Part shown: piece by piece, positions 2,931 through 64,000 of the stretch
How positions within the stretch are numbered: position 1 is the stretch's first letter
Layout: every line of letters begins with the position of its first letter
NCBI GenBank assembly: GCA_950097015.1
Contig: CATNEN010000033.1
Location: 4,774,001-4,838,000, forward strand
Length of the DNA: 64,000 nucleotides
Reading direction: 5' to 3'
DNA from: Macrostomum hystrix
Taxonomy: Eukaryota > Animalia > Platyhelminthes
Made by a program: the position numbers and the translations under genes
Notes under the pieces: model-generated
What the model was told of the DNA's origin: nothing
The model's input: only the letters and a program-made list of their open reading frames with translations
Databases searched by the model: none

Positions 2931-5921
2931 GACGCAGATAACCCGTTCGTCAGGTCGGATCTGAGCTAAACACCGAAGGGCCTTAGACGCTGACATTGCT
3001 GTCAGTCATGCTAAAAGCAAAACGAAAAATGTGACCTGTATTCATGAATTTGGACATTTAATCCTGATTTAGGAAGACAAAAGCATCTCTGATAGTCACA
3101 GACTACTTTCCCTTTTTATTCTACCCGAATGTATAAAGCCAGGCTAGAGCTCATTTCACCAGACTTTTTCTGAAGTTAAGGAGATTAAAGGGAAGAGTGA
3201 TTTAGAGCTCCCATCATCAAAACGAGATCAAGTTGATCGGACTGAGTTAATGCATCATTACTCCGATCCCATTAGTCCTGTCACTGCCTCAGCAGATATC
3301 ATTTGAGAGCTTTCGAGTTGCTCTGCCAGAGAGCGGAGCTTGCAAACTGATTGCAACTAAACCGATGCAATTTAGTTATGCCAAACAAAAAATGAACAAT
3401 AAATACGAGCTACAACATGCAATAAATTATGCATAAAGTATTAGCTCTAAACACTTTTGCCCAAATCCAAACTCCCGGTGGAACGCGAAAATCGGCTTCA
3501 CTTTAGACCCCAGTTATTTAAGAGCTTTCTAGTTTCTAGTTCTAATCCTATGCATAGGATTGACATTCTATGCACACCAGTCACAACAAAACTAAAACGA
3601 AAAGGGTTTGATTCTATGAACTGGGGTACGTTGCATATAAAATCCGGTTGGTACAATTCGAAAATTTTTCCTATGCAGATTTTAGGGGACATTTTCACTT
3701 CATCTAAGATATGATACGGGTATAATATCCTCGAAATAAGGAGCATTGTGCAGAACATTGAGGAGAAAAAGCTAAGGTATTATCCAGTTCAAATAGTTCA
3801 CGACTGAGCTCTTACATGCACGTCCTCTTAGTCACGGAACGTCATTTACAGCCGACCATCTTCAACAACAATAGACTTGACACGACGTCCGTCTGTAGCT
3901 TGATCGGCGCCAGCTTGCACAGACGATTCACCTGACGAAGCCGAGACAGCGCCAGACGACTCAGCAGACCAACAGACTAAGTCGATGATCCAGGCGAGAC
4001 AGAAACATTCTGCAGACATCAGATGCCAGACGAAAAACTTTAAATGATGACCCAATATATGAACTCTGAACTTTGGCTGAACTCTTGGCAGCTTTTCTAT
4101 ATTTAATATGGAGGAGAGCAAAAATAACTTGAGAAGAAATGTCTGGCGTTGGTCCTAGAACTTCGACCAAAGAATAAATGTACTATACAGAATGCCAGAG
4201 CATCTGAAAAAAATCCGCAGCAAAATTAATATGCAATTAAACTACTTTTGTCACGAAAAACCTTAGTAGTCAGAACATAAGTCACTCTTCTTAAAAGTCA
4301 CTATTTTAACGTATTAAAATACATGGGTAATTTAAGCATTACTCGCAAACTATAACAATTTATATAGTTAAAAAAAGCTATAACATAAAACTATATATAT
4401 ATCCGAACCCATTACTTCACGACGGTTAATGAGCAATTCAGAACAACTAAAATTGTATTTATAGGTGTGTTTCTGCTTTGAAAATACATTTTTACAGATA
4501 CGATATTATAAAACCATACTTGTATTCCAACGCTCGTATGCTACTCTCTGATCTTTCTTTGCAAAAGTAGTTGATGCGTTTGTTAATTTGTGTAAATAAT
4601 CTATGGTCGATTCGCCATTCTGTGTAGATATACTCGTGAGGCAGATCTTTTTTAAACTCCCGCCAATTTTACGCTATTATCTGTAGTCGTCTTTTTTACG
4701 CAACACTCGCGGCTCGTTTTATGTGCCCCAGATGGTCATGCACCCACCCCTATTTTTTGTATAAATATCATGCCATTTTAAAACACTCCTACAACTTGCG
4801 TCTCCCCCGTTCCCAGTGAATCAGCCTCAATAAACACGAACGCTCTTATTTCCTCCTTGTTTCTCAGTTACGATATAAATAAACTGAGTTACTTAGTTAT
4901 TTCTACTAGGAAGAAGCAGTTGAATTTCCTTACCCTCCCGGTCTTCCCACCTAAAGATCCCTCGTCGGCCCTTTAAAACCAAATCCACCCTATTATAAAC
5001 CCCTTTATAACCCGATTATCCCGCCTTAAATCCCATTTAAATACCCACCTGAAGTCTACCTGAAGCCCGCCTGAAGTTCTCTAAATATATCCCCTGAAGT
5101 CCCTAAACTCAGCAATTGTCCACCCTAATGAAACTATATTAATTCCAATCCCATAGAAGAAGGTAACTGCGAAAGCATCACCAGGCAACTTCAATCCATC
5201 CTAATACGCCCCACGGACTGTGTACCTCAAATCAGTGAATTTAGCCCTCGTGCCAGCAGCAGTAAAATATTATTCCCCCCTTTGTTAGTAGCTAGTGTCT
5301 TGCCGCTCGGGCATTAGCGCTACCTTAGGTATAATCCGAACAGCGTGAAAATACCTACTTCTACCCTTATAACTTACGCTACCATCCCCCCCCAAATACT
5401 CAGCTCACCAATCCCAAATCTAGAGAGAGCTGAGAGGTCTGCTACACTCGCATTAAGACTTCGACTATAAAGCCTAACGGGGTTGTCCAAAGTAAAAATT
5501 GATCCGGCATTGTATATTCAATGCATGCTTTTTCATGCATTATATTCAATTTTCATGCATGGTTGTGATTGAGCATTCTGTGTAATATACTGAGTACTAT
5601 GCAAAGTCTGAATGCCTGAAATTATTTAATTGGGGTATGGGGTTGGATTGCCGAACGAATAGAGGAAAGAAAAGGACGGGCCACACAGCTGATCGATAAA
5701 TTATAAATATAATGTACATGTTCGCACGAGTAAGCGATAACAGAGGGGCCCACGCATGGAGAGGATGTTGCGAATGCACAGATTCCGTGACAGAAGCTTG
5801 ACTATTATCTGAACATTGTTAGTGTTCATTATTGAGTTAATTCCCTACATTCAGCCTTAATGCTTAGCTATGGTTATAGACATCAAGAATATTCATGGAT
5901 CTTCTGCCTGCTCTTCGTTCA

Positions 5922-8900
5922 TCAAGCCGCGGGTTCCGCTAAACTCAGCAGCGAACGCTGCAGTTCCTCCTTCATATTGGTCAGCGTTCTTAGTGCGGCG
6001 GCTTCCTTCAGTCCAGTCTGAAAGGAATTAATAAGAATAATTCTGCCTATTCGGCCAAAGAGTGCTGTGGTGGCATGGTGTCAGAGTTTTTCTGAGTTTG
6101 AGTTCAAATCCTTGCTAATCCCAGAATTAATGGAGCTTGTCAGGATATTTCTAAGTAACGCCCAAAAGGAAATTTCTAAGCCACAGTGAAAGTGTGCAGA
6201 TACAAATTTCAGGCCGGATGCACAGCCCAGATCGTATGTTAGCATACATATCCGTGAGTGTGTTCTTGCGCTGTTAGTAAGGGGTCAATGCTGACAATGC
6301 TGTCAGTAAGCCTGTTGCTACTGGTGGGGCAGAGCCCCCTCTCTTTTTTACCTTGTGGTTGCGTTAGGGGTCTCGCGGCCTATTGGCGGCGTTCTGTAAG
6401 TAAGTAACTAACGAGTCAAGATGACGGACAATATTTCTTGCTTCCAATGGCTTGCTAAATGATTCGTCGTAAGTACATACGTGCTGATAGATCATTATCT
6501 CATTTAGGAACAGACACAAAATAGCTATAGAGCCTTACCAACTGCTGCATCAACATGTCTGTGGCAAGGCGCAGCTCCGGATACTCTTCAATGATATCAG
6601 CGTGCGACTGGATCAGACGCACCACCTGATCAACATCAACATCCTTGCTGCAGTACTCCAGTCCAACGAGCAGCTCTTGAGGATCCATTGAGTTGGACTG
6701 CAACAAGTCCTCAACCCAGCGGCGGGTCTCCTGCCTCTGCTCACCTCTTTCCAACAGTTCGTGTCTCAGACACCTGAGCAGGGCGTCAAAGTTTATGTAA
6801 AAGTATGTTCTATAATTCCTCATCTGTAACGGGAAAATTCTTCGCATGACCAAGGGCAGGAAGTCTAGCTCTGGCCGCTTCTTGCTCCAAAAGAAGAACT
6901 TCCAGGCGGAGTCTGTTCCCTTCAGGTGCTGCCACACTTGGTCAACAATTCGGGGCGACACTTCCTCTGCAATGGATTCGCTAAATTCAAAAGACATGCC
7001 CCTGCTGACACCCCAGTGTCCAAGACTGTTCTTCAGAATCTCACATGCCTCACTAGACATGCCCTGCTTAAGACTAGCCATAACTCGCAGACACTCCCTA
7101 GCAGAGAAGGCGCAGTCTGGAATACGGTCAAGGTCGGCCGTCAACGACTGGGCAGAAGAGGCGTCGGTCTCTTGGGACAACTGATGCAACAGAGAAGTGA
7201 CCATTGTGTAGATCTCGTGGTATTCCAATTGACCACTACTAGCAGAGACTTTTTTCACTGGGAGAATCTCAAAAGACAGCCCAGGAATAGTTAGGAATGG
7301 GTGGAAGTAGAATAAATTTGTTTTCAGGGGCCGAAGCGTGCCTAAGAACTGTTGCAGCAGGTTGTCCAGTTTGTTAATAGTCTCTGTTACCACTTGAGCA
7401 GTCTGGGCTTTTTCGCCGCCTTTTTTCAGATACACAATGGCGTCCCGCATGAAGAAGTGTCTCATGCACTCGTTGCCAGCAGTCCCCCTGTCTTTAAGGT
7501 GACGCAAAAGCATCTGCAGGGCTCGCCTGATCAGTGCAACCAGGTTCCTCGGCTCCCAAACCACAGATGGCTGCTCCTCTAGCATGTAGAATATGATAGT
7601 CTTGGCGTGGTAGGACTTGAGCCCATCAACCCTAGCAGAGATTATCTTCTTGATTAGATATTTCAACAGAATGAACACCTGGCCCTGCACGTCCGTGAGG
7701 CTGCGCATCAGTCGCCGCTCTAGAAAGGTGGTGCTGACGCGCAGAAAGTTTCCCTCCGCGCCTGGTGGAGCAGCTGTGGCCAGGTGGCAGGAGGATGTGA
7801 TCAGTTCCTGTCTAAGAGACTGCAGTACCTGAGGTGACACATTGGTGGACCAGCACTCTTCCTGCAGCATATGTATCGTAGGATAGGCGCAGCAGCGGTG
7901 AACCCTGACTGAGTCGACAGCCGGCTTTAGCGATGATCCTCTGAGCGGATTGGCTGGACAGGCAGCTGTAAGAATATCCACAGTGAGAAGCTGTAAGTAC
8001 TGTGAATTGGCTATTTTGAACGATGGAATATAGTGTGCGAGAAACGTCAGTAAATGTTCACGTTGAAAAAGAAGAAATACGCTCGTATGATCAATCCAAA
8101 ATGTTTTGTGATTCTGGAAGTTGTTTCATCGGATAGAGCGGAACATTTTAGCCCGTATTTAGGATTTTTATGGTGACTGGTTGAATATTTTAGGAGATAC
8201 AGAAAAAAATGTGGGCCTTTGAAATACCCCGCGGTGTTTCTAGTGTTTAAAGTTGGAAGCAGCGTCTTAAGTAGAGTTTCATAATTGAGCTCGTATTTAC
8301 GAGTAGTTACTGGTAGATAATACATTGGCCTCTTGCATCTTAGACACAGGTAATTATTCCATCGCAAGGTGACATTCATTTGGGGCAAATCCACAGAGAG
8401 AATGCTTCGGTCCTTGGTTTGAGCAGTTTGTCTGGTCTGCTAGTTCAAAATGCCACAAAATTCTAATTGGCTAGGGGGCCAACTGCCATGTCAAAGTTAC
8501 TAAAACTTACGCAATCCTCTCCATTCCATGTGTCCATTTGCGTACTCGAGTGTCGTGTCCGGGTCCACAGCATTGCACTGGCACTTGCCTTTAATATGGA
8601 AGTGGTTGCTCTGGAAAAACTGGGTCACGTCGATATCCGAGTCCGCGTCCGTTGTGCCGTCAAGTCTGACTAGGCTGTTTCCCCAGCCTTCCGAAAAGCT
8701 GCCAACAACAAAGATTTCTTCTACACCGAACAAGCGCCTAGTGATCTGCTGTAGGACGTCAGCCACAGCGGATTGAACGGACGCCCTGGACTGCTTGAAG
8801 CCAGACCGTGACATCGCAGAGTTCAGCCGTAAGCTAAGTTCTTCGCCTGTCTCTGCTATTAACCTGTAATGCAGCGATGGGCGATACCCTAGAAAGTGAT

Positions 8901-10733
8901 GCCAGCACTTTCAGCGGTTTGTGTAGGTTATTAAGTAAACTAAAACTCGATGCTAAAAGCTGCTGTGCAATGGAAAAATACTGCTGTAATAAAAAATTAC
9001 CTTTCTGGCTTCTGCGCTGCAGATCTCATATGGTTCAGCTGTTCCTGCAACTGAATGCACTCTCCTAACAGTTCTTCACACCGCACAGAGATAAGCCACG
9101 ATGGCCGCCCGCCGCCGTCCAGCAAATCCAGAGCAGCTTGAGTCTTGCCGTGCAGGCACAGAAATTCAAAGTGATTCGGATCAACGGAGAGGCCACTGGC
9201 AATGCTGCTTTTGCTTGTGGCCTCAGCAAGCAGCTTAGCAACCTCATAGTGACCGCTCTCCAGTGCGATCTGCTGAGGTGTTCGCAGAGAAATGTTGGGC
9301 CGTGTGGCATCCGCTCGAGCTCGAAGCAGAAGCTCTACTGTCCTCCGATGTCCATTCTGAGCTGCGACATACAGAGGTGTTGAGCCCCTGATATTAGTCC
9401 TGTTGACGTCTGCGTGTCCCTTAATTAGCGCGTCAACTATCTCATTCCGGCCAATCTGGGCGGCTACGAACAACGGCGTCTTGCCTTCTTCCGCGGTCTG
9501 TGCGTTGACATTTGCGCCAGCGTCAATCAGCAGCTGGACCACTGACTGATAGCCGTTCTGAGCGGCTCCCAAGATGGGCGCCACCCCGTCAATGTCCATT
9601 GCATTAACGTCAGCCTGAGCCCTTATCAGCGCGTCCGCCACCATTCTGTGCCCATGTAGGGCAGCCACCTGAATTGGCGAGGACCCCTCGCGCTGCTGAA
9701 AGTCGGGATCCGCACGAGACTTCAGCAGCGTCTCTACTACGCGGAGGTGCCCTTGAGCGGCGGCTATGTACAGCGGTACTTCGCCTTTGTTAGTGGCCAG
9801 GTCTACGTTAGCTTGGGCACTAACTAGCTGGGTGACTATTGTGTGGTGACCGTGCTGTGCGGCAATGTATAGCGGCGTGACACCCTCCGCTGTCTGGGCA
9901 TTTACATCTGCCTGAGCTTCGACCAGCACTGCTACAATATCGTTTTGTCCATGGTGACAGGCAATCCACAGTGCGGAGAATCCGCTTTTTGTCACAGCGT
10001 CAACGTCAGCCTGAGCCCTGATTAAAAGCTTTGCCGTTTCCAGATGGCCACTGTTTGCGGCAAAATGAATGGCTGCCTCACCCTTATGATTTACTTGGTC
10101 ACAGTTTATTCCTGCCGTAACCAGGGACTTGACTATTTTAGTGTGCCCGAATGATGAAGCGATCGCTATTGGAAATGACGAACCATTCGCACCTGGCAAT
10201 GAGCAATCAGCGCCAGCTCCAAGCAGCAGGTCAAGCAGCTCCTGTTTGTTGAATCTTGACGCCATATTGATTGCCGCCAGGCCACGACTGTTGGGCAGGT
10301 TGATGTCACAGTGCGCCCCGATTAGCTCCTGGACAACTGATCTGTGACCGGCGTGTGCGGCGAGAACCAGGCTCGGGGTAGCGGCCTGGCCGGCGCTGAA
10401 TTCAGCTCTCGCCCCGGCGCGCAGCAGAGAAGCGACTACCCGACGGTTGCCAGCTATTGATGACGCAGTCAGCGGAGATTTTTGGTCCCTTGTAACAAGA
10501 TTAACGTCAGCTGATGCTCTAACCAATAAGTCAACCACATCGCAGTGACCACTATCAGCAGCCAAGAAGATGGCTGTCTCACCTGCCTCTGTTTGGATGT
10601 CAACATTGGCCTGTGCCTTTACTAGGATCTCCACAGTATTAGCATCGCCACCCGCTGCGGCGATGTGCAGTGCAGACCGCCCCTCAGCGTCTTGTTGGTC
10701 AATTGGATCCTGAGGCTGGATGGCGAGCTCCAT
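5922..10733 (-). CDS. Ankyrin-repeat (about 15) plus cGAS-like/Mab-21 nucleotidyltransferase fusion protein, about 1202 aa; exons 10733-9001, 8863-8511, 7965-6539, 6017-5922
   Basis: Phase-consistent GT-AG junctions: GAAAG|GTAATT..TTACAG|G, TTGC|GTAAGT..TTCTTACAG|CT, TTG|GTAAGG..TTTCAG|ACT. In-frame TAA directly before the ATG. NTase motif VVGSFSEG..DSDID, third acidic residue candidate in AVDSV, Mab-21 motifs LKSYHAKTIIF and CMRHFF. Exon 4 is less certain; without it the ORF stops at 6500. Confidence 0.88.
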
Positions 10734-11249
10734 TTAAACTCCTTGCTGCTTTCTGACGCTTATGCTTCCTAGTTGTCTGCTTCTTGCTAGCTTCATGTCT
10801 ATTTATGAAGCTATATAGAGTATAGACACTCGCTCTACGCTGGTTTCCACTTAGGGTAGAAATGCACGCGTTGCTTTGCCTGACATGCTTCGCTCTGCTT
10901 CTCTGCGTCGTAGGCAAAAGGCGCAAACTAAAACTTCTGTCTAACTAAATACAGTCAGTCTCTGATAAATAGTCACTTTTGTAGTCCTAATTTTGTACGC
11001 ACAATGTACGCACAGCGGCGATCTTTTTTTAGACGCGATCTTTTCTGGATTTTTAGTGCTGACAAGCATACAAGCCGCAGACATTTAGTATATTTGGACA
11101 TGCACACAACTACGAAACAGAAAATTAAACGCCATGACAAAAATGCAGATTTTAATTTTTATGAAGCTAAAATCGAAGCTTAAAATCCTGTCAAACGAAC
11201 TCGATCTCATGGATCTTGAAAATGAATTTCTTCAAATTTACTGTCATTC

Positions 11250-12683
11250 TAAAGGATCAATGTACAGTATAGCAATGTTCATAATATTTTTTGGAATGAC
11301 AGGACAGAGAAAAAGAGAGAGAGAGAGAGAGAGAGAGAATGAGGCGTATGCGCCCCAAATTTACTCTAGCCTAGAACACCAACAGCTGTTCACTCGCACC
11401 TCCTCCAGATAGTTGGACATTGAGAGTGGGTTTGTGTAACTTAATGTGCAGAGCTTCAAGAATGTTAAGTTTATGCTCGTTTTTGCTGTTGTCTATGACC
11501 TTGAAATGAGAGGTTATGTCTGGCTCATCACAACAACCATGGCATTGCAGCAAATGTTCATGAATCGGAGAGTTTCGTTGCCTATGTTCCTTGGCTCTCG
11601 TGAGTAGGTGTCGCTTGGTTTTACCCATGTAGGTAATGCTCTGGTCAACAGAGCAACGAAAACGATAGATGACACCTGCCTTGAGAGCACATGGAACACG
11701 AGACTTTAAACTCCCAACAAATTGACTGACTTTATGAGTACGGAACACAACATGAATCTTAGTCTTAAAGAATTTTTGCCAAGTTTTGCGAATTTGCCTC
11801 TTAAACACAATCGAAGAGTTGCCCAAAAAAGGAAGAGTCAAGATTGGTTCTCCTGGTTCTCTATCTGGCCGCTTAGGTTTAAGCTTTTTTTCAATTTTTT
11901 CATCTAAGAAATTACCAATAACCTTCATGATGTAGTTGATAGGGTATCCATTGGCAGTGAGAATATTGATAATGTTGGTAAACTCGTTGTGCAGCAACGA
12001 CCAAGAGCAACATACTGTATAGGCACGATGAAGCAGACAACGAATGACTACCGTCTTCCATTCCCTGGGGCACATCGCCTGGAAATTAAGCATCAAGTTA
12101 GTGAATGTGGGCTTGCGATACACTTCGGTCTCAATAGCGCAGTCCTTCAGATGGATCTCGATGTCAAGGAACGGTAGTTTCTTTCCGCCATATTCCACGG
12201 TGAATTTAATGTTAGGATGGGTGGCGTTTATTGTGTTGAAAAATTGCAGAAAGTCTTCCTCGTTATCAAAAATAGCGCATGTGTCATCGACATACCGTTT
12301 GTAAAATTTCGGAGCACAGCTTTTTTCCATCCAGGTTTTCTCCCAATGTGACATGCAAACGTTAGCAAGAGTGGGGGCAAGAGGGCTGCCCATAGCGCAG
12401 CCGTCAATTTGCTGGAAGTACTTATCGCCGAATTGGAATATCCCAGACGTGGCAATAACCAACAATTTCTTAAACACTTTCTCCGGGATTGGTGGCGCTG
12501 GGTTGTCTTTGAAGACCAAATTGGTAGCAATGTCGATCGCCAGATTCAGCGGAACATTGGTAAATAGTGAGGTGACATCCCATTAAGTTACACAAACCCA
12601 CTCTCAATGTCCAACTATCTGGAGGAGGTGCGAGTGAACAGCTGTTGGTGTTCTAGGCTAGAGTACATTTGGGGCGCATACGC

Positions 12684-13299: not shown

Positions 13300-14659
13300 C
13301 TACGGGTGTGTCATAAGTAATGTCACTGTGGTTGTTGTGCGGGAACCCAAAGCAATAATCATCCAAATAGCTCGTATATATTATATATTATATTATATTC
13401 TGAAAGTACATTTATTGAGAAGTTGCCACCACACCTGAGCAGCAATTTTAATGTCTATGGCCAAAACTGTCGCAAGAATTTGTTAATCCGATTTAGCAAG
13501 CGCAACGCGATGAAATCTTCTTTTTGCAACGAGCAAAACTCAACATGAATCACGACAAGACGCACATCCAGTTCTACGCTTTCATTCGCTTCAAGCTTGG
13601 AAAATCTGCACTTGAAGTAGAGGAGGATCTCCGGAACACACTGCCAGACAACTGCCCAACTCGCAGGACAATTTACAGGTGGTTTCAGAACTTTACTGAT
13701 CCTGGGTTCGAATTGGGAGATGCCGCCAGATCTGGACGACCATGTTCAACCAGGACAATAGAGAACATCGAAGTCATCAGCGACCTGGTCAAGGAAGACC
13801 CGCGGCAGTCTGTCAGGGAGCTAGCGGACTGCTTGGAGATTGATTTCAAGACAGTCCATCGCATCTTGACAGAGGATCTCCATCTCCGAAACGTCTGCTC
13901 GGTCTGGGTGCCCCATGACCTCACTGCGGACCAACGTCAGGCCCGTGTGAACTGCGCCAATCAGATCCGCAAGGTGTTCAGCAGCCGGGGCTTGGATGAC
14001 ATCCTAAACTGCCTGGTTGTTGAGGATGAGACCTGGCTCCACCTGGATGGCAAAAGCAGCAAGGCAGACAATCGCTGCTGGCTGGGAGCTGGGGACTCCA
14101 GGCTGACTGTGACCAGGAGGTCCATCTCAGACAAGAAGACCATGCTGCTGGTGGCATTCACGCCAAACAAACGAGTCTCCATCTGTACAACTCCGCCAAA
14201 CACCAAGGTCGATGGCCAGTACTTCATCGACTTTGTCCGACACACTGGGAACCTCTGGCGCACGCTCCGGTCAAATCCGATTCACCTGAACGAAGTTCTG
14301 TGGCAGATGGACAACGCACGGCCTCACACCTGTCAGGCTGTTTCGGATTTTCTGGCTGGACGGCGAGTAAATCTGCTCTGGCAGAGTCCCTACAGCCCAG
14401 ACTTCAACTTGTGCGACAGGTTTCTCTTTAAATGGCTGAAGGCAGACTTTTCCCAGAGAAGTTTCGCAAACCATGATGAGGTCAAAGAAGCCGCGTTGCA
14501 CTGGTTCCGACAGCTGGAGGAAAAACACCTGCAGGCTGAGGTAGAGAAGCTGTACGAGCACTGCCAGAGGGTGATTGATATTGGGGGACACTATGTTGTT
14601 GATTGATTGTTAGTTGGTCTGTTTTACCCTCAGTGACATTACTTATGACACACCCGAAG
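13300..14659 (+). mobile_element. Intact mariner (Tc1/mariner, DD34D) transposon
   Basis: TIR core cgggtgtgtcataagtaatgtcactg at 13303-13328 / 14631-14656, extending 3 bp further with one mismatch. TA at 13298-99 and 14660-61. Confidence 0.95.
13545..14606 (+). CDS. Mariner transposase, 353 aa
   Basis: N-terminal HTH region, WVPHDL, DETW, DNARPH and YSPDFNLCD, with 34 residues between the last two Asp. No stops or frameshifts. Confidence 0.95.
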   Translation: MNHDKTHIQFYAFIRFKLGKSALEVEEDLRNTLPDNCPTRRTIYRWFQNFTDPGFELGDAARSGRPCSTRTIENIEVISDLVKEDPRQSVRELADCLEIDFKTVHRILTEDLHLRNVCSVWVPHDLTADQRQARVNCANQIRKVFSSRGLDDILNCLVVEDETWLHLDGKSSKADNRCWLGAGDSRLTVTRRSISDKKTMLLVAFTPNKRVSICTTPPNTKVDGQYFIDFVRHTGNLWRTLRSNPIHLNEVLWQMDNARPHTCQAVSDFLAGRRVNLLWQSPYSPDFNLCDRFLFKWLKADFSQRSFANHDEVKEAALHWFRQLEEKHLQAEVEKLYEHCQRVIDIGGHYVVD

Positions 14660-15188
14660 TATGACGGACTGGCAGGTGAAACCGTTCCCTGTGGGTTGCA
14701 GCTACTAGTCCACATCCAGACCGAGTATCGAGTTATCGGGCTTACTCATCAGTGAGAATAAAAGTAGCTCATTAGAGCTGGCTACAATCAAAACTTTTCA
14801 ATCTGATTTGGCTAATATAAGCTAAAGCTCAGAAGTCAAGTGGAGATAATTCCAATCCATTCTCTGATGGCTCATGACTCGTTGCATTCGAATCAATATC
14901 TAATAGTCTTGAGAATATTATCAGACACCCCGAGTTCAGCCTTCGGGAAGAAAAGCACCCGCATTAATTGATTGAGTTTTCCGCTCCTTCTCACTGACAA
15001 AGCAGCCCTGTGACACATGATTCCAGACAGCCGCACCCAGAAGCATACGCACCCGATCAATACTCAAAGTTAGGATTAGGCTTCATTCGATGTCACGGCC
15101 TGGGCGTAGTCTCAATTTAACGAACCGTTTCTCAAGACTACTTAAGCAACAGGTGGGAGAACTCAGCGACGTCCAACTCAATGTCAAA

Positions 15189-17824
15189 ATGGCAGAACAA
15201 GCAGTCGCAGTGCTCAGTTTCGTTCTGCTGCTACAGTCCGCTGCTCAATTTGTGAACTACCAGCCCGGTCAGCTGATCTGCACACCTGGTGGCATTATTA
15301 ACCTGGCCGTGGTCGAGAGCACACAGTTCTACTGCGACAGACCCGACACGGCGATGACCGAGTCCGTCTTCCTGCGCAACCTGGCGCCTCACTTCGCGGC
15401 CAAGCTCGTCAACGCGAACTGGAGTAGACGGGGTCTGAGCATCGGCCTGTTGCATCTTGACCCTTGCTACTCTGACCGTCGTGTTGTCGACCTGTTGAAG
15501 CGGGTCAGGCCTGCATGGACCAGTCCCAATGGACTCGGCTTCGGAGGCGGATTCTGTCATCAGCAGGTAAACAGCCTCAGAGAACAGTTCTACTTTGTTC
15601 ACGCAGTCATCTCTGGTTGGAGGAGCAGCGAGACACAGCTAGTGTCCAGCCAGGTGTCTCTCTACTCCATGCCTCAGGTGGGCAACGAGTGCAGCAGCGA
15701 CGCTCTGTCCGACAAGTCGCTCTACCCAAACTTGTTCCGTCTGGTCGCACCAGACAGTTATCAGGCCAAAGCAGTGGTGGATCTTGTGCAGCATTTCAAC
15801 TGGACACTGGTGGGCATTGTGCACAGGGACGACGTTTATGGGAGGGGCCTGCTGCAGAACACTCGATTGCTGCTGCAACAAATTGGTAAGGCTAGGCCAA
15901 ACGTCTGTGTGGCCTTCACTCTAACAGTGAACATATTCCTCAAGATCGAAGATGTACAGGCTCAATTCATCAAGTTTCCGCACCTTCGAGCCTTTCTAAT
16001 ATTTGACTCTTTTGCTAGCCTTCCTGACTTTGTATATGACGCTATTAGCAGCCGAAACGGAATCATTGTGACAACCGACGCAAATTCCGCGGCTTACAAG
16101 AATTACACTTTGGGAGCGCTCTACATTTCGTTCCCGCGATTCGCCACACCCGACTTCATCCGGTTCTACCACTCACTCAATGCAAGCGAGGTTCTCGGAT
16201 TCCCATGGGGAGACCGTCTGCTCAGACTGCTCTTCAACTGCTCAACCGAGGAAGCGGCCGCATGCTGCTCAACTGGAAGCTGTCGAATCGGAGACAAGTC
16301 GAGCGTGTCGACGGACACGGTGGTGGCTCCAGTAGCCAGACTGCTTGACTCGATCAGCATCCTGGTCGCATGCATCGAGAGAGTGGCCATCATCGACTGC
16401 GCCGACGTGTGGCCGAACGTCACGGCCGTGAGTGCGTGCGTCACCGGTCAGAAGGTGATGAGGCTGTTGTCGAATTCCAGCTTCCCGTTCATGCGAACTG
16501 GAAACGTGAGCTTCGATGCCAATGGTGATGGATCTCCGGCGTACGAGGTTCGTCAAGAGCAGCCGGACGGTCGACTGACGAAGGTCGGGACGTGGACGGA
16601 GAGCTCGGGTCTTGTGCTGACCGGCTCGGACCTCACACCAATCCGTTGGTGGAGAAACTCGAGCTGGGACCCGCACCAACTGCAGCAGCAGGTGCCGAGC
16701 TCATTCTGCAGTGTTCCATGCAGTGCGGGTGAGATCAGACTTGACACTGACGCCTGCTGCTTCACATGCAAGGCCTGCTTCAAGCAGGAGGTCGTGTCCG
16801 TCGACGGCAGGTCGTGCTTGTCGTGTCCCGAGTTCCACTGGCCCAGTGCAGACCGACTGAGCTGCGACCCGATCTCGGTGTACGTGTGGCGAGACGGCAT
16901 GCAGTTTCCGTTGCTGCTTGCTAGTCTCGCAGTGCTGTTGATTTTCCTGCTCATTGTTTCGGCCATGTTCATCAACCAACGAGAGCACAAGCTCATCAAG
17001 GCCTCGTCGATTCACCTGTCCGTCACCTGCATGAGCGGCAACCTACTGGGCATTGTGTGTCTGGCTCTGTTCACAGCGGACAGCTCCGATGCAGTGTGCA
17101 ACGCTCTGAACTGCTCGTTCCAGCTCAGTCTGAGCGCCTGCTACGCCAGTCAGTTGGTGAAGACTCTGCGAGTTCACCTGATTTTCTCTGCGTCCACGAT
17201 GGGTCGTCCGGTTCCATGGCTCGCCAGACAGAAGCCGATGCTCATCGCGCTGACAACTGTTATCCTTGGGATGGTGAGTCTTTTCGCACATCAGCACTTG
17301 AGCAGTAATCCTGCTGAATCAGTTTCATTGTAGGTCATTCGAATGATCTGTTGCAGTGCGCTCTGCTCACCGTGGTGACGACACTCCGACCGCTCAGAGC
17401 GCAGCTCAACCAAATCGTGACAGATTCTCTGAAGCCGCCGTTCGTCGAGAGGAACTGCGCGATCGCGGCCACGGCGTTCTGGACGCCGCTGTGTTGCAAC
17501 CTGCTCATCCTGTCTGTCACCTGCGGCCTGTCGCTGAAGACGCGTTCTCTGCCCGACAACTTTCACGACACAAAGTGCATCTTGGCCAGCGGAGTTTCCG
17601 GCCTCTTCTTGTGGTCCGCCTTCGTTCCGTCCGCCCTCACGGCCAACTCGCTGACCACCGCGATGCTGCTACTCGCGTTCTCGTGCAGCCTCACCCACGC
17701 GCTGCTGCTCTCTATCCTGTTCGCACCGAAGCTGTACGCCGTATACGCGAGGTCCGACGCGGAGAACAACGTGCAGTTCTACGCGGCAAACACCGCAACT
17801 TCCGTCACTGTGTCGCGGTCTTAG
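15189..17824 (+). CDS. Class C GPCR (mGluR/CaSR/taste-like), paralog B; exons 15189-17273 and 17357-17824
   Basis: Signal peptide MAEQAVAVLSFVLLL; Venus-flytrap motifs LSDKSLYPNLFR, PDSYQA, FNWTLV; Cys-rich domain CSVPC..CCFTC..C..C..C; 7TM ending FAPKLY. 83-nt GT-AG intron at 17274-17356. Confidence 0.93.
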
Positions 17825-19026: not shown

Positions 19027-22000
19027 TCAATAAGTTATCAATGGGCACAGCTTGTTGATAGGCCTGATCAGCATCCTATCCGCCACTTGCACCTTCGCTA
19101 CTCGCACGTGGCCGTCGCTGCCCGGGTACACCTCCAGAACTCGAGCCAGCGGCCAGTGTCCCCGCGGGCTGTCATGGCAGACGTACAGAACGACATCGCC
19201 AGGCTTCAGGTCGGGCTGCACTCGCCGCCACTTGCTCCTAGCTCCGAGGCCGGGTAGCCACTCTCGCAACCACCGACGCCAGAACGCCTTCACCAGCTGC
19301 TGCACGTAACGCCACCGCTTGGTAGGATTGAACGCCTCATCAGCTGCGATCTCCGGTGCCAGCTGCCCGCCGACGTGTCCGTACAGAAAATGCGCCGGCG
19401 TCAGGACAGGATCGTCGCCCGGATGCGATGACTGGTATGTCAACGGCCGCGAGTTCAACAGCGACTCAGCTCCCGTAAACGCTGTCACCAGCTCCTCATC
19501 GCTGACTTCTGCTGTTGTCAGGATCGCACTGATCGCTTTCTTTGCCGACTTAATCATGGACTCGTGGACACCGCCGAAGTGCGGAGCTGCAGGTGGATTA
19601 AAATGCCACTTGATCGGCATGTGGCATGTGCGCAACTGCAATTCGTTCTTGTCCACCGACTTCCACAGCGCTTTCAATTCTTTGTCGGCTCCTACGAAAT
19701 TTGTTCCATTGTCTGAAAATATTTCTTGAATCTGACCTCGGCGGCTGATCATTCTAAATAGAGCATTAAGGAAACTGCTCGTATCAAGGCCGTACGCCAT
19801 CTCCAAGTGGACTGCACGCGTTGCCATGCACGTGAAGAGCGTCAAGTAACGCTTCTGCCGAACACGTCCTCGACCCTGCTTCGTCAGGAATGGTCCGCCG
19901 AAATCCACTGACACCTTCGTGAACGCTCTTAGTGGTTCTAGCCGATCTGGAGGCAATGGCGCCATTAACTGCGAAGCTGGCTTGGCTCTTCTTCTCTTGC
20001 ACTCCGAACACTTAGCTTCCCAATCTCGAATGGCTTCACGGCCTGCTGGAATCCAAAATCGCGCGGTCAATGCTGCGAGTACTTGATTGGTGCCGCCATG
20101 GTACGCTCTTTCGTGGTGGTGTTTGATGATCAGCTCTGTCACTGGATGGTGCTTTGGCAAAATAATCGGCGATCGGGTGCTAAAGGGCAGTGCTTCGGCT
20201 CGCTGCAGTCGGCTCTCCGAGCGGATCACGCCATTCGGATCGATTTTCGGATGCATGCCGGCCAGCTTGCTGCTCTCAACAACGCTCTTGTTCTTCTTCA
20301 AGGCGGAAAGCTCCGTACTAAATGCATCTTGCTGAGCTTCCTTGATGATTCTTAGCTCAGCATCCTCCAGCTCTGCCGGTTGTAGCTCTCCTCGAGTTCG
20401 GTGCTGTGGTTCGAAACGGCAGTTGTTGACGAACCGACTGATCCAAGCATTCAACCGCAAGAAGCGCAGCCAACTTGAGAACCTACTCGGGTCAAGCCGT
20501 TCTATTGTTCTGCGTTGCTCGCAGCTGACAAGATTCGCACTCAGGACCACCTCGGCCGCGACTGAATTCTTCTTAGAATTCCGCGTTTCTAGGCCCTCTG
20601 GTCGCTCTAGCACGGTGCTTGGCCATGCGCACTGCTCTTGATGCAGAAACTCCGGACCGCTCTTCCATGTCTGCTCCTCGGTCAGCTGACTGATTTTGGC
20701 TCCTCGTGACAGCAGATCCGCAGGATTGCACGCTGTCGGCACGTATCGCCACTGAATCGGATCAGTTGCCTGCTGGATTTCACCGACGCGATTCGCAACG
20801 AACGACTTGAAGAAACGGCCTCTGCCACGAATCCAGTACAGGACATTCATGCTGTCGGACCAGAAAACTGCGTCCTTGATGTTGATCTCCAGCGCCTTGG
20901 CAATCTTGACCGTAAGATGAAGCCCAACGACTGCTGCCATTAGCTCCAGCCTCGGGATGCTCATGGTTGCTACGGGTGCAACTCGAGACTTCGCCGCGAT
21001 GAGACGAACGGATGTTGAGAAGTCGGCATACTTGCATCTTAGATAGCACACCGCTCCGTAGGCCTTTTCAGAAGCGTCAACGAAACAGTGTAGCTGAGAC
21101 TGAGTAGGCACACTAGAGAGCTGCAGACAACGGTCAACTCGAAAGCAGTTCAAAGTCGCCAAGTCGTCGCACCATGCTTGGATTCTCTTTTGTAGGACTT
21201 CATCCGGCGCTTCATCCCAGTCAAGCCCGCTGCACCACAGCTCCTGAAGGAGAATTTTTGCCTGTGCCGTGAATGGTGCAATGAGGCCGAGAGGATCGTA
21301 AACTGACGCTAATCTCTTGAGTAGCTCCCTCTTCGACTTGACTGGACTCGACTTGCTATCAGCAGCAAAGGTGAACTCATCGTCTTCACCTTTCCAGACG
21401 ACTCCAAGCGTCTTCGAAACCGGCAACGGTTGTCCATCCAGGTTCACCTCCGCGACCCTATCCTCCGGGGCGACACGCGCAAGCAATTCTCTTGAGTTAG
21501 AGATCCACTTTCGGGCATGCATGCCAGCTCGCTCCCACAATTGACTGAGCTCCTGGTACAACTGAATGGCATCTGCGTCAGTTTTCTTAGAATCCAGACA
21601 GTCATCCATATAAGTCGACTGGAGTACCGTTTCTGCTGCAGCAGGAAACTCATGCTTCAACTTCTTCGCGTGCTCTTGTGTCACAAATTGCGCCAGAAAT
21701 GGTGAGCTCGTTGCTCCAAAAACGACTCTGTTGAACTCGAATGTCTGCGGTGCCTTCATCGGATCCATGTCCCGCCAAAGAAAACTGTGCGCTGCTCGAT
21801 CTTCTGGTGCGATCTCAATTTGCAGGTACATTTCAGAAATGTCGCAAGCAACTGCTACTGGATGTCTTCTGAAGCGCAGCAGAACGCCAACCAGATCTTG
21901 CTGAAGCTTCGGCCCTGCCAGCATCAGGCTGTTCAAAGACTGTTCGCCTCCCGCAGAAGCATCGAAGACGATGCGAACTTTTGTCGTTGCTTTGTCCATC

Positions 22001-24499
22001 CGTACTACTGGAAAATGCGGAAGGTAGTACCGGTTCGCAGGCTCTTGTTCATTTTGAAGCACCCTCCTGATGTAGCCAATTTTCTCATAGCGATCGATTA
22101 CATCCTGGTACTGCTTTGCTACTTCCAGGTCCTTCAAGAGCCGCTTCTCGGTGTTGCCTAGCCGCTTGATGGCCATCTCGAAGTTGTTGGTCTGGATCTT
22201 CACGTCCGCTCTCCATGGAACACCAACTTGGTAGCGCCCGTTGACGAACTTTAGTGACGACCTAGTACGCTCCAACGCAATCTGCTCTTCCTCTGTGACT
22301 AGAGCTGATTCCATTCGTTGAACCTCCTCCACCTCCCAGAATTGACGTAACAATGGCTCCAGGTTCTCAATCCTACTTCCACTGAAGAACGTATTTGCGA
22401 ACAATGAACGCTCCGAAACTTCATCAACCTTGCCGATGCACGTCCAACCCAAAGGCGTTAGTCGGGCTTGCGGATCTCCAGGCTTACCACAAACTTCCAG
22501 GCGGGATGAATGCAAGTCGGCATAGTCGACACCGATCAGCAGATCAACAATCGGCGGTGTCTGCATCTTCTCGAACGGAATGCTAGCCAAGTGCGGCCAC
22601 TTCGACGCCAATTTCTGCCAGTCTACGACTTCCATGCTTCCGGTGACACTGTCCGTCGTGAAAGCCGTGATCTGCTTACTGATCTGTCCATCCACACTCT
22701 CCAACGTGCATGTTACTGGCGCTGTCATAAAAGTCTCAACTTGTCCATTCATCACATTCACCTGAACTGATTCCTGCTTGCCTTGCAATCCCAGCTCTGC
22801 GGCGATCTCTGCATTCAAGTACGTCTTCGTGCTGGCGTCATCCAGCAAGGCGTTGACCTTCACCGCACGTCTATTCGACTTAAGAATGACTGGCACTGTT
22901 CGCAGCGACACTGCACTAGCCTCCCTGGACACCATAGTCACAGTTTCTGCTTTTGGCTGGTATTTCTCAGCTTGCTGCTTTGCCGCTGAAGCTGCCTCGG
23001 GCTTTTCTTTTGCCTCTGATCTTGCTGTTGAATGCAGCAAACGATGGTGTGTTTTGCTGCAACCGTCAATGCCACACTTGCGACCTCGTCGACAGTTCAT
23101 AGCACTGTGGCCATGTCCTAGACACCGGAAACAAGCCCTGGCTTCCTGAGCAGCTTTCCATCGATTTTCGGACGACAGCTTTGCAAACACTGGACACTTC
23201 CACAGTTCGTGCGGCTCCTTGCAAACAACACAAGAGTACCTCTCGCCTGAGCTTTTGCTTTGATGCATCACGTGGAAAGTCTTCTGCTTCCCTTCTTTCT
23301 TTGGTTGCTCCTGGTTGGAAGTGGCTACTCCGTGCACAATCTCTGCTGCCTGAGTCCGGAACTCGGACTCACGCAGCACCCATTCTCGAAGTGTCCTTAC
23401 ACCCTCTGCTTTCTCTTTCTCGAATAGCCAACGGCGAAACGCTGCGACCATCGGCTCTGGGAGCTTTTTCTGCAATCTAGCATACAGTAGGCCATCGCTG
23501 AGTTCGGTGTTCTTGCCAGCTTCTTCTAGATTAATAACAGCAACGTCTAAGAGATTCGCAAACTTCTTCAACTCCTCTGCACTATTCTGCTTCACAGGTG
23601 GAGAACTGTCTAATTCTTCTAAATAAAGAGCCAACTGCCTCCTCTTGCCACCATACTCTCGCTCCAGCCTCTCCTTCGCCGCCTCATACGCCGCTGCCGA
23701 GTGACCCAGGTGCTCGATCACTTTCAGCGCTGCTCCCTTCAGATACTGGCGCAGCTGAAGCAGCTTGAATTCCGGAGTTGCAGGCGCCCTATCAATGCAA
23801 GCCATAAAGGCTGCCTTCCACGCTTCATACTGCTGCTTGTCGCCATAAAAGGTAGGAATCTCCACTCTACGGAGCATCTTCCAGAGATCCTTCGATAGTT
23901 GCTGCTCTGAAGAATTGCCCACTCTACGCTCACAGCAGTCACCAGAAGCGCTGGCTAGATCATCGTCCTCCTTCTCGAAACCCCTTCGCTGGTTTGAAGA
24001 CAGGTAGCCAAACTCACCACTCCATCCTCTGTACGGATTTTGCTGCTGTTGACTTTGCAGGAGCTCCGGCGCCGCCTCGCTGAATCCGAATCGCTGGCCT
24101 CGGCTGGCTCCACACAGTGGCTGAGCCGCTGCTGCCGCTGCTGCCTCCTCAGGTGCCGCCGTAGCTGTAGTCGATGTTGTTCGCGGTGCTGTGCGGCCCA
24201 TGAGGTACCGCTGAACCGCCTGCATAGCTGTTCTATAGTCGTCCTCGATTGTGTCGATCTCGTCGAGCAGCTTTTTCTGTGCCCCTGGATCCGGTTGCTG
24301 TTCTAGCTCATCGCAACGCTTTGGTGACGGTCTCGCATTCTCTCTGAATGGCCTCCTTTTCGTCTGTGATGAGCAACCACGAGAGCCTACTGCGGCTCTT
24401 GGTGAGTGCAGACTTGCACTTTGCCTTTTGTCGCCTAAGAGCGTTCAGCGATGACACGTCGAGCTCTGGCGGTTTCTTCTGTTCTTCATCGTCGCTCAT
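19027..24499 (-). CDS. BEL/Pao gag-pol polyprotein with a +1 frameshift at about 24313
   Basis: Three Cys/His knuckles, protease LLDDAST, RT YMDD, RNase H FVDASEKAYG, integrase HHCC plus DFGGP/SDNGTNF. The short ORF 24499-24308 joins the 1732-aa frame if one base is removed (ALDELEQ). Confidence 0.92.
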
Positions 24500-38865: not shown

Positions 38866-41800
38866 ATGCTGGTGCTATTAGAAAGCTCGGCCGGGTTCGC
38901 CATCTTCAAGGTGCTGGACGAGAAGCGCCTGGTTGAGAGCCAGAATGTGCTTGGTGACTTCGCTAACGCCTCGGCCGCCTCTGGCGCCGTGCAGCTGTGC
39001 CAGTTTGTCAAATTCGACGACATCACCGAAGCTCTGTCGGCCACCACCGCCATGCTGGAGGGTCGCGTCAGCAAGAAGCTGCGCAAGGCGCTGCGCAAGT
39101 TGCAGAGCTCCGAGCTGCAGGACGGCGTCCTCGGCGTGGCCGACTCGCGGCTGGGCAGCGCCATCAAGGAGAAGCTGGGCATCAGCTGCGTGTACAGCTC
39201 ATCTGTGATGGAGCTGGTGCGCGCCATCCGGTCCCAGATGGACGCCTTGCTGCCGCAGGTGGCGCCAAGGGAGATGGCAGCCATGCAGCTGGGCTTGGCG
39301 CACAGCCTCAGCAGGTTCGGGCTGCTTAATATTTGCCATTGCTAAAAATAGTAAAAATACTTTGCTTGTTACTAGTAGTAGAGCATCGCCAACCCACCGC
39401 CGCTGCGCAGGTACAAGCTGAAGTTCAGTCCGGACAAGATTGACACCATGATAGTGCAGGCCATCTCCCTGCTAGACGACCTGGACAAGGAGACCAACAA
39501 CTACGTGATGCGAGTGAAGGAGATGTACGGCTGGCACTTCCCAGAGCTGGCCAAGATTGTTCAGGACGGGCAGGCTTACGTAAAAGCTGTCAAAGCCATG
39601 GGCATGCGAGAGAACGCCATCAGCACCGACCTGTCCGAGTGCCTGCCAGAAGAGGTTTGCCACTTCACACACGACCCAGCCACAATACGTGTAGCTATGA
39701 CCCCACCCAGCCACAATGCGTGTAGCTATGACCCCACCCCAGCCACTATGCCTGTAGCTATGACCCCACCCCAGCCACTATGCGTGTAGCTATGACCCCA
39801 CCCCAGCCACTATGCGTGTAGCTATGACCCCACCCCAGCCACTATGCCTGTAGCTATGACCCCACCCCAGCCACTATGCCTGTAGCTATGACCCCACCCC
39901 AGCCACTATGCGTGTAGCTATGACCCCACCCCAGCCACTATGCGTGTAGCTATGACCCCACCCCAGCCACTATGCGTGTAGCTATGACCCCACCCCAGCC
40001 ACTATGCCTGTAGCTATGACCCCACCCCAGCCACTATACGTGTAGCTATGACCCCACCCAGCCACTATACGTGTAGCTATGACCCCACCCCAGCCACTAT
40101 GCGTGTAGCTATGACCCCTCACACCAGCCACTATGCGTGTAGCTATGAACCCACCCCAGCCACTATGCGTGTAGCTATGACCCCACCCCAGCCACTATGC
40201 GTGTAGCTATGACCCCACCCCAGCCACTATGCCTGTAGCTATGACCCCACCCCAGCCACTATACGTGTAGCTATGACCCCACCCAGCCACTATGCCTGTA
40301 GCTATGACCCCACCCCAGCCACTATGCGTGTAGCTATGACCCCACCCCAGCCACTATGCGTGTAGCTATGACCCCACCCCAGCCACTATACGTGTAGCTA
40401 TGACCCCACCCCAGCCACTATGCCTGTAGCTATGACCCCACCCCAGCCACTATACGTGTAGCTATGACCCCACCCCAGCCACTATGCCTGTAGCTATGAC
40501 CCCACCCCAGCCACTATGCGTGTAGCTATGACCCCACCCCAGCCACTATGCCTGTAGCTATGACCCCACCCAGCCACTATACGTGTAGCTATGACCCCAC
40601 CCCAGCCACTATGCGTGTAGCTATGACCCCTCACACCAGCCACTATGCGTGTAGCTATGAACCCACCCCAGCCACTATGCGTGTAGCTATGACCCCACCC
40701 CAGCCACTATGCGTGTAGCTATGACCCCACCCCAGCCACTATACGTGTAGCTATGACCCCACCCCAGCCACTATGCATGTAGCTATGACCCCACCCCAGC
40801 CACTATACGTGTAGCTATGACCCCACCCCAGCCACTATGCGTGTAGCTATGACCCCACCCCAGCCACTATACGTGTAGCTATGACCCCACCCCAGCCACT
40901 ATGCGTGTAGCTATGACCCCACCCAGCCTCTATGCGTGTAGCTATGACCCCTCACACCAGCCACTATGCCTGTAGCTATGACCCCACCCCAGCCACTATG
41001 CCTGTAGCTATGACCCCTCACACCAGCCAATATGCGTGTAGCTATGACCCCCTTCCAGCCACTATGCGTGTAGCTATGACCCCACCCCAGCCACTATGCG
41101 GTTCGCTATGACCCCACCCCAGCCACTATGCGTGTAGCTATGACCCCACCCAGCCACTATGCGGTTCGCTATGACCCCACCCCAGCCACTATGCGTGTAG
41201 CTATGACCCCCTTCCAGCCACTATGCGTGTCGATATGACCCCAACCGCCCAACCACTTCTGCAGATAATCGAAGATGTGCGCAACGCCGCCCTGGTGTCG
41301 CTGGGCACGGAGATGACGGAGGCCGACCTGGCTGCGGTGCACTCCATGTGCGACCAGGTGTTGGAGATGAGCGAGTACCGCACCCAGCTGTACGACTACA
41401 TCCGCAGTCGCATGAACGCCGTGGCACCCAACCTGACGGTTCTAGTCGGCGAACTGGTCGGCGCCCGCCTGATCTCGCACGCCGGCACCCTGCTATCGCT
41501 GGCCAAGCATCCATCGTCTACAGTGCAGATTCTCGGCGCTGAGAAGGCCTTATTCAGGGCGCTGAAGACCAAGCATCAGACGCCAAAGTACGGCCTGCTG
41601 TACCACGCCTCCCTGGTTGGTCAGGCCAACGCCAAGTTCAAGGGCAAGATCTCCCGCATGCTTGCTGCCAAAGCTGCATTGGCCATTCGTGTTGATGCTC
41701 TGGGCGAAGGCGACAGTATCGGGGCGGACATGGGCCTGGCCAGCCGGGCCTACCTGGAGCGCCGGCTGAAAAGTTTGGAAGGCGGCGGCGGCGGCGGGAT

Positions 41801-62700: not shown

Positions 62701-64000
62701 GCCCGTTGCAGACTCCTTGAGGCAGCCTCTTGTACTGGAACAATCCCTGTGGCGCAGGAAATGCCGTTTTTTCACGACTCTCCGAGTCCAACATCACCTG
62801 AGAGTAGCCGCTGGTGAAATCTAGCGTCGAAAACATCGTGGACCCTGCCAAGGCGTCGATCAGATCGCTGGTGTGAGGCAGTGGATGACTGTCCTTCACG
62901 GTCACAGAGTTGAGCAGTCTGAAATCGTTCACGAAACGCAAACTACCGTCCTTCTTCTTCACCAGGATGACTGGGCTCGACCATGGAGAACTCGACGGCT
63001 CTACGATGTCGTCTCGCACCATCTGCTCGACCATCTCCGACACCGCTCGCTGGTTCGGAGGCGATAACCGCCGAGGAGGTACTCTGATGGGCTGGGCCGA
63101 CCCCGTGTCGATTTTGTGGTCTAGCAGTGTAGTGCAGCCCAGGTCGTTCGGACTCTTTGAAAACACATCTCGGTACTGATGCAGCATATCCTTGACACTT
63201 CGGACTTGATTGGCTGTCAGATTGTTCTCATCGATATGCACTTGCGCTACAACATCGGGTCCATGCTCAATTTCTTGGTCGTTCACTGACTCAACATGCA
63301 TTAGCGACTCCGTCTCCATCGGCTCGAAACTCCCCAGCTTGGTTCCGGGGTAAAAAGTATGAGGCTTAGTGTCCGTGTTGACATAGTGCACAGCGATGAG
63401 TCCGCCTCGCATCACAGAGAGGCTGCGCGCTCCACACAGGACATTTGAGATTTCCTTTGAATTGTCGGGCTCAAAGATTCCGCACTCACCATTAACAGCA
63501 GTCGCTGATCCAGTCGCAAGTCTCGCAGGAAACACGATTTCATGACCAGCGGGTACAGTTGTACGGTCCACCACTTCAACGGCGAATGCACCACTCCCTT
63601 GTGCTGAAGATTCCATTTTTACTAGCTGACCGCACACACTGAGCGTTTGCCGATTGCAGTCGATGATGCAGCCACAACTTCTCAGGAAATCTGCACCCAA
63701 CAAAAAATCCTTCGCCAGATCGTTGACGATCAACACCTCCTGCCGAACAGTCGCAACACCGAAACTCAGCTGCACTTCCTGCCAACCACAGGCTGCCAAA
63801 TAGTTGCCGTCTGCTAGCTTCAGATGCACGGGAGTCGCCAACGGCAAGAGTTTCTCATTCAGCTTACGAAACAGGGAACTCGACATCAGCGACTGTGAAC
63901 ACCCAGTGTCAACCAAACAGCTGGCAGGGACACCCATCGGCAGAATGCGGCACTGCACCAGCATGTTGGCGCCGGTGGCTGAGCAGGACACCTCCAGGAC
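59756..64000 (-). mobile_element. Ty3/Gypsy LTR retrotransposon, 3' part (runs off the window)
   Basis: pol in PR-RT-RH-IN order. Purine tract gaagaaggagagca followed by a putative 153-bp LTR (59908-59756) bounded by TGTAAG..CTTACA. The 5' LTR is not in the window, so the LTR extent is unconfirmed. Confidence 0.9.
60144..63991 (-). CDS. Gypsy pol with a 1-nt deletion frameshift at about 62612-62614
   Basis: LVDTG protease, RT with FLDD, RNase H TDASG/YCTTRRELLAIV, integrase HHCC and DF/TDQG/ERMN. Adding one T restores FSKGFEEHLRRLQLVLQKF. Confidence 0.9.

Follow-up and report, generated by a model that had tools for sequence, protein, structure and literature searches.

An intact, transcribed gene joining ankyrin repeats to a Mab-21/cGAS-like nucleotidyltransferase domain in Macrostomum hystrix, a divergent member of a catalogued flatworm family

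Among cGAS-like receptors (cGLRs), 13% carry extra domains, including ankyrin (ANK) and TPR repeats, and Table S2 of the same study lists five Macrostomum lignano proteins with Ank_2 (PAA86972.1, PAA45980.1, PAA68676.1, PAA58690.1 and PAA68216.1) (Li et al. 2023, PMC9980059). Five M. lignano enzyme-domain constructs were cloned for its 140-enzyme screen (Table S3, rows 89-93), which used nucleotidyltransferase (NTase)-only constructs and nucleic-acid ligands; cGLRs with unidentified ligands were found, and ANK and TPR fusions are mentioned there without study. The present analysis concerns a minus-strand gene of Macrostomum hystrix located in a 64,000-nt stretch of DNA (assembly GCA_950097015.1, contig CATNEN010000033.1, positions 4,774,001 to 4,838,000; hereafter the window). 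It is an intact, transcribed gene of four exons encoding a 1202-aa cytosolic protein in which 15 ANK repeats and a linker precede a Mab-21/cGLR nucleotidyltransferase, followed in turn by a TPR-like helical tail. Its sequence places it, as a divergent member, in the large Macrostomum ANK-cGLR family catalogued in 2023, and it keeps the complete G-S / D-x-D / D motif. The original prediction for this DNA presented the ANK-fused receptor as a little-characterised type, whose ANK array may sense proteins or autoinhibit in place of nucleic-acid sensing; as a kind of protein it is not new, since Li et al. (2023, PMC9980059) already catalogue such proteins in Macrostomum. Searches of the literature turned up no functional study of ANK-fused or flatworm cGLRs other than that one.

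The closest described systems are the M. lignano ANK-cGLRs, comprising the five Table S2 proteins and PAA83064.1 (P0169). Like the window gene, they proceed from an ANK array through the NTase domain to a family-specific tail, and they share with it the signatures GS[FY]xEGWGNSL..SD[IV]D, [LV][RK]PAxDxV, RVSTxFLER, YHAKT and CMxHFF; the constructs listed in Table S3 also share signature motifs with it. Identity to the window gene is only 40-50% in exon 3 and falls to 35-41% in the ANK array, and sequence comparison indicates that the gene probably comes from a different subfamily than these named proteins. Bivalve-type cGLRs (P0103-P0158; Cv-cGLR1, PDB 8gjw) are homologous throughout the NTase core and helix bundle, with GS..EG..SDxD and, around the third Asp, D.V.A.RC..[WY]P present in both groups, and some of them have C-terminal TPR repeats. 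In contrast to the flatworm family, however, the ten scanned bivalve-type proteins lack an ANK array, the 10-aa insert GWGNSLxxLDG is missing, and Pfam Mab-21 (PF03281) matches nine of the ten. Cv-cGLR1 is moreover a characterised enzyme, active with double-stranded nucleic acid. A cnidarian cGLR core with ANK repeats (2023, Fig. 4C), likened to the present gene by description only, follows the same idea, with ANK as the presumed ligand-interaction module, and that fusion is likely independent of the flatworm one. Human cGAS and MB21D2 (PDB 4k9b and 7lt1) have in common with the ANK-cGLRs the bilobed Mab-21 nucleotidyltransferase fold, as seen in a model of a homologue (P0003), and the GS / DxD / D motif, at about 14-18% identity. 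Compared with human cGAS, the ANK-cGLR is without the zinc thumb and the disordered basic N-terminus and has gained ANK and TPR-like domains.

The coding region is assembled in phase from four exons (1733 + 353 + 1427 + 96 = 3609 nt, that is, 1202 codons plus the stop TGA), all of them free of internal stops in their own frames, and all three introns have GT..AG ends. The start codon is well defined because an in-frame TAA lies directly upstream of the ATG. Written with a slash at the splice site, the borders read ..CCAGAAAG/GTAATT at the exon 1 donor, ..TTACAG/GTTAAT and GGATTGC/GTAAGT at the two ends of exon 2, ..CTTACAG/CTGCCT and CAGTTG/GTAAGG at those of exon 3, and ..CCTTTCAG/ACTGGA at the exon 4 acceptor. 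The underlying minus-strand open reading frames (ORFs) lie at 10733-8997, 8814-8500 and 7981-6500. The proposal that three such frames splice into one gene of about 1200 aa was right as to a single in-phase gene; the exons number four.

Transcript data bear directly on whether the parts belong together, because the Pfam domains fall in separate ORFs, as would be expected if neighbouring ANK and Mab-21 genes, or a dead gene, only seemed to join in phase. Four public runs contain 70-74% of the sampled words of 5850-10800, of which the exonic share is 3609/4951 = 0.73, and three of them (X2, X3 and X5) were mapped onto the window. An X2 contig of 4173 nt joins all four exons with 0 mismatches (5850-6017, 6539-7965, 8511-8861(+2) and 8999(+2)-10800); its last joint can just as well be placed two bases further right, which gives 8863/9001. 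On the plus strand every skipped part has CT..AC ends, which on the gene's strand are GT..AG, and individual junctions were also seen in X3 and X5. Coverage of introns 1 and 3 was zero in X2, X3 and X5. Since the contigs are spliced and these introns empty, the sequenced material is taken to be RNA, and since one X2 contig joins all exons at exact junctions, the ankyrin and Mab-21 halves lie on one mRNA. The predicted junctions 9001/8863, 8511/7965 and 6539/6017 thus all occur on a single X2 molecule, and separate ankyrin and Mab-21 genes, which would have overturned the original prediction, are contradicted by the contig spanning both. One X3 contig does retain part of intron 2 with a changed donor base, as an artefactual or dead gene might; nevertheless, the frame is open for 1202 codons, database homologues continue across the exon 2/3 junction, and the annotated M. 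lignano paralogue P0169 has the same four-part exon layout. The artefact explanation is accordingly very improbable and is refuted for practical purposes.

The X3 contig differs from the window by a plus-strand C>T at 8510, found in X3 only, which, read on the strand of the gene, replaces the intron 2 donor GT by AT. The contig continues from exon 2 into intron 2 without splicing (8312-8510), at depth 6, and X3 is without the 7965/8511 joint. Read-through would meet a stop after three codons (TAG, 8502-8500), ahead of the third catalytic Asp. The change may be a natural, segregating null allele, the basis being one contig. Further apparent joints at 7621/8674 and 10487/10586 were rejected as paralogue or assembly noise; their sides measure just 24-27 nt, and their ends lack GT..AG.

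A profile of the family was searched against 1.84 billion proteins; this and the other searches and folds used single exons of the gene or natural database homologues. The family comprises 84 clusters at E <1e-30, and more distant matches were Pfam Mab-21 + Mab-21_C proteins, some fused to TPR or a protease. The window gene itself matches family members at E values down to 1e-115. In the ten clusters looked up, the named members were all from M. lignano. The best identity of the window gene to any database protein was 46-52% at most, and a quick tree placed it inside the family with four environmental fragments (SH-aLRT 96), apart from the named M. lignano clades. The enzyme domain starts between about residue 240 and residue 950 in full-length members, so the length of the ANK array varies greatly. 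P0169, which belongs to another subfamily, consists of an ANK exon, a 117-aa exon, a stretch of about 470 aa and a short last exon; because this layout matches the four parts of the window gene, the family seems to have inherited both the fusion and its introns from a common ancestor. The signature columns, the ANK - NTase - tail architecture, the tree placement and the exon layout all place the gene in the Macrostomum ANK-cGLR family, and that it is a real fused gene of this family is held to be practically certain.

In the encoded protein, the ANK array, earlier estimated at about 15 repeats, contains 15 in a clean 33-aa register and is followed by a 73-aa linker. Exon 2 carries VVGSFSEGWGNSL (G632, S633) and SDIDV (D654, D656), while D713 (KPAVDSV) lies 17 residues into exon 3, ahead of RVSTTFLER, LLKYLIKK, SYHAKT and CMRHFF; the motifs on which the original prediction relied (GSFSEG, DSDID, AVDSV, SYHAKT and CMRHFF) are all present. 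The C-terminal extension that it described also exists, with a length of about 287 aa (roughly aa 916-1202) in place of about 270. The 271 aa of the tail within exon 3 were modelled, with high confidence, as a compact, mostly helical domain. A structural search across the PDB with the tail returned generic alpha-solenoid, TPR or 14-3-3 proteins (Z <=7.9), and a shape search of the Atlas returned TPR proteins (TM 0.50); no Pfam family matched, and the Atlas feature search scored 0.83, under the useful range. As modelled, the tail is TPR-like and without a specific known relative.

The vertebrate cGAS zinc thumb, whose absence had been noted beforehand, is indeed missing, the pattern H-x5-CC-x6-C being absent from every exon. 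With no zinc thumb and a similarity to cGAS limited to the Mab-21_C helices, the gene does not qualify as a vertebrate-type cGAS orthologue. The enzyme core has a Cys/His set of its own, each position conserved at 77-94% in the family: H-x4-C-x-C ... NGH (8530-8598, exon 2), and RCC and SCH (7888-7893 and 7783-7788, exon 3). It differs from the cGAS zinc thumb and might be a family-specific metal site.

Homology of the enzyme domain to Mab-21/cGLR proteins differs in visibility with the tool. Single-sequence tools detect just its C-terminal helices: Pfam Mab-21_C matches at 31.6 bits against a cut-off of 24.1, exon 2 alone gives a sub-threshold NTP_transf_2 match (E 0.016), and among PDB sequences a profile search recovered cGAS solely through the Mab-21_C helices (E 7e-5). 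The core homology is shown by profile-profile alignment, since PF03281 never matched the family. When the family profile was aligned by hhalign with a profile of 14 Mab-21 + Mab-21_C proteins, the two matched over 305 columns, beginning at the spine helix and extending through the whole helix bundle (probability 99.9%, E 2.7e-32). The register places GS on GS, SDiD on SDxD, and PAvDxVxAxRCCxYP on e.D.V.A.RC.sWP; the GS, the DxD and the third Asp of the acidic triad, a misalignment of which would have told against the prediction, thus correspond to those of canonical proteins. Predicted structure agrees, as judged on P0003, an M. lignano homologue (45-49% identical) modelled with AlphaFold at moderate quality (pLDDT 64.9, built from a 10-sequence alignment); residues 1-334 of the model match the folds of human MB21D2 (Z 14.3), cGAS (Z 13.9), MAB21L1 (Z 13.6), Cv-cGLR1 (Z 13.2) and Sp-cGLR1 (Z 13.1). 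With the same model, the top 50 Foldseek matches were all cGAS (50/50), so that predicted structural homology to cGLR/CD-NTase enzymes is found through this homologue.

The active-site motif of the window gene, VVGS-X20-DIDV-X54-VDS, fits the cGLR motif GS - X8-20 - [DE]h[DE]h - X50-90 - h[DE]h published by Li et al. (2023, PMC9980059). The same study expects Q or T immediately before GS (h[QT]GS), where the window gene has Val; across the family this position is occupied mainly by V (51), T (17) and F (11). The study nevertheless admitted M. lignano proteins in which M, L, F or T stands there, so the Q/T criterion was not applied as an exclusion. Among the 72 aligned family domains that span all five positions, 64 keep every active-site residue (G, S, D, D, D); one is lost in the other eight, so such loss is tolerated in some copies. 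The window gene keeps the five, together with 50 of the 51 columns conserved at >=88%. Such conservation points to selection for metal/NTP binding in most copies, the window gene among them, and falls short of proving catalysis.

On the preferred interpretation, the protein would be a ligand-activated nucleotidyltransferase. On activation, the NTase core would bind two NTPs through a metal site formed by Asp654, Asp656 and Asp713 and would then make a cyclic di- or oligonucleotide, a product that a STING-type receptor might read. The flanking N-terminal ANK and C-terminal TPR-like domains would recognise a ligand or partner, or keep the enzyme off until a partner binds. Several points weigh against this interpretation. 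The residue preceding GS is Val and not the Q/T of the published motif, the family has an insert of about 10 aa (GWGNSLxxLDG) between GS and DxD, and PF03281 matched neither the exons of this gene nor the four family members scanned. The model used for fold comparison is that of a homologue and not of the window protein, and its active-site loop (residues 39-66) has pLDDT <50. The run type of X2, X3 and X5 is without record, RNA having been deduced from splicing and empty introns. The 15 active enzymes described in the 2023 study (PMC9980059) come from insects, anemones, molluscs, hydras and corals, with no flatworm named, and no family member is reported there as enzymatically active, with five M. 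lignano NTase constructs in the 140-enzyme screen. Finally, the roles given to the ANK array and tail are purely inferential.

Some of these points are what would be expected of a pseudoenzyme or scaffold, in which the Mab-21 domain, no longer making a nucleotide signal, would serve for protein interaction or nucleotide binding, a role suggested for MAB21L1 or MiD51, and the ANK and TPR-like parts would assemble a complex: Val replaces [QT], the insert separates GS from DxD, a catalytic residue is lost in 8 of the 72 domains, and, with five family members cloned, the phyla named for the 15 active enzymes include no flatworm. Yet the five catalytic residues are kept in 89% of domains across clusters less than 50% identical, a pattern difficult to account for unless catalysis, or at least metal/NTP binding, is under selection. 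Moreover, because the constructs were NTase-only and the ligands nucleic acid, inactivity in the screen, if any, may only reflect a missing activator. A pseudoenzyme is therefore considered unlikely, and catalytic activity is slightly favoured; the same slight preference applies to the overall interpretation, in which gene identity and family membership are taken together with activity.

The charge of the protein bears on a different possibility, namely that, as in cGAS and Dm-cGLR1, the NTase domain itself binds dsRNA or dsDNA, while the ANK array and tail merely localise or recruit. The helix-bundle half is basic (pI 9.7, 29 K+R vs 17 D+E), and the nearest characterised relatives, Cv-cGLR1, Sp-cGLR1 and cGAS, sense nucleic acids. 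However, the N-terminal core half is acidic (pI 4.9), and net charge is about +6 for the enzyme domain and about -20 for the whole protein, unlike the nucleic-acid-sensing cGLRs, for which Li et al. (2023, PMC9980059) give a pI >8.5. These sequence-derived values offer weak hints. The large, length-variable repeat arrays on both sides are also more reminiscent of ligand-recognition modules. A canonical nucleic-acid sensor thus seems improbable. That the repeat domains form the sensing or autoinhibitory part, as the preferred interpretation of a ligand-activated enzyme has it, is a tentative proposal, plausible without being probable.

Activation of cGLRs by something other than nucleic acid is an open problem, and, because Macrostomum is a tractable laboratory flatworm with a very large ANK-cGLR expansion, this family would be a good place to ask what repeat-fused cGLRs sense. 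More speculatively, and rather doubtfully, the family could be a flatworm counterpart of NLR-type repertoires, with dozens of paralogues whose length-variable ANK arrays and TPR-like tail recognise pathogen or danger proteins in place of nucleic acids, each switching on a cGAS-like enzyme whose product is read by soluble double TIR-STING proteins; if true, cGLR and STING would form a protein-sensing pathway in a phylum from which cGLR signalling is said to have been mostly lost. The window gene itself leaves current knowledge unchanged and adds one clean, transcript-supported example with intact active-site residues, from a subfamily absent among the named M. lignano proteins. The positions of its parts and of neighbouring features are collected in Table 1.

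Table 1. Features of the ANK-cGLR gene and its surroundings (positions in the 64-kb window)
Feature	Position	Strand	Evidence or remark
ANK-cGLR coding region, 4 exons, 1202 aa	5922-10733	-	phase, GT..AG introns, single 4173-nt contig; mRNA extends at least 345 nt beyond 5850 and at least 80 nt beyond 10800
Exon 1: ATG at 10733-10731, aa 1-577 and two bases of codon 578	9001-10733	-	sequence
15-repeat ankyrin array, aa 17-505	9219-10685	-	Pfam Ank_2 E 9.6e-111; 33-aa register
Linker between ANK array and enzyme domain, aa 506-578	9001-9218	-	sequence only
Intron 1, 137 nt, GT..AG	8864-9000	-	joint 8861/8999 (cut +2) in X2, X3, X5
Exon 2, aa 579-695: N-terminal spine helix and first half of NTase core	8511-8863	-	sequence, profile alignment
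GS-motif codons Gly632-Ser633 (VVGSFSEGWGNSL)	8698-8703	-	G 85/86, S 85/86 family members; aligned to canonical Mab-21 GS
Codons Asp654-Ile-Asp656, predicted [DE]h[DE] metal-binding pair	8629-8637	-	D 85/86 and 82/87 in family; aligned to canonical SDxD
Intron 2, 545 nt, GT..AG, interrupts NTase core	7966-8510	-	joint 7965/8511 in X2 and X5
Exon 3, aa 697-1171: second half of NTase core, Mab-21 helix bundle, most of tail	6539-7965	-	sequence, Pfam, homology
Codon Asp713, predicted third catalytic Asp (KPAVDSV)	7913-7915	-	D 77/85 in family; aligned to invariant D of D.V.A.RC..WP
Pfam Mab-21_C (HhH/H2TH-like), spans LLKYLIKK and SYHAKT	7445-7678	-	31.6 bits, cut-off 24.1; cGAS chains E 7e-5, same stretch
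Family-specific C-terminal domain, 271 aa modelled, compact, mostly helical, TPR-like	6539-7351	-	pLDDT 87.1, pTM 0.88; best Z 7.9; TM 0.50 to TPR proteins; no Pfam
Intron 3, 521 nt, GT..AG	6018-6538	-	joint 6017/6539 in X2, X3, X5
Exon 4: final 31 aa and TGA (5924-5922)	5922-6017	-	sequence, spliced contig
Penelope-like retroelement fragment, 382-aa ORF	11371-12519	-	reverse transcriptase and GIY-YIG; just upstream of gene
Tc1/mariner-type DDE transposase	13524-14606	+
Class C GPCR, single 747-aa ORF	15090-17333	+	ANF receptor, NCD3G and 7tm_3 domains
BEL/Pao polyprotein, uninterrupted 1732-aa ORF	19027-24225	-
Nop-domain ORF (Nop56/58-type snoRNP), conserved gene	41223-42062	+	E 2e-61
Gypsy-type protease-RT and RNaseH-integrase ORFs	60144-63991	-

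In the window, no second copy of the Mab-21 exons (2-4) was found, and the matches to the ANK exon all lie inside the gene itself. A tandem duplication and an operon-like partner were consequently rejected, the other large ORFs being transposons, the class C GPCR and the Nop-domain ORF.

Some database entries of the family are unusual in themselves. A fragment, P0004, filed in NCBI under a Kangiellaceae bacterial metagenome-assembled genome, is almost certainly an animal contig placed in the wrong bin. P0013 (1346 aa) has two complete enzyme modules in tandem, and P0028 (3379 aa) and P0160 (3199 aa) resemble merged gene models or giant fusions. Within the gene studied here, intron 2 contains a short high-copy repeat at about 8100-8156. 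Depth there in the three runs reaches 350-660 (8008-8173), compared with about 9 in the exons, and the flanking sequences are diverse; the repeat is probably a piece of a transposable element that is transcribed.

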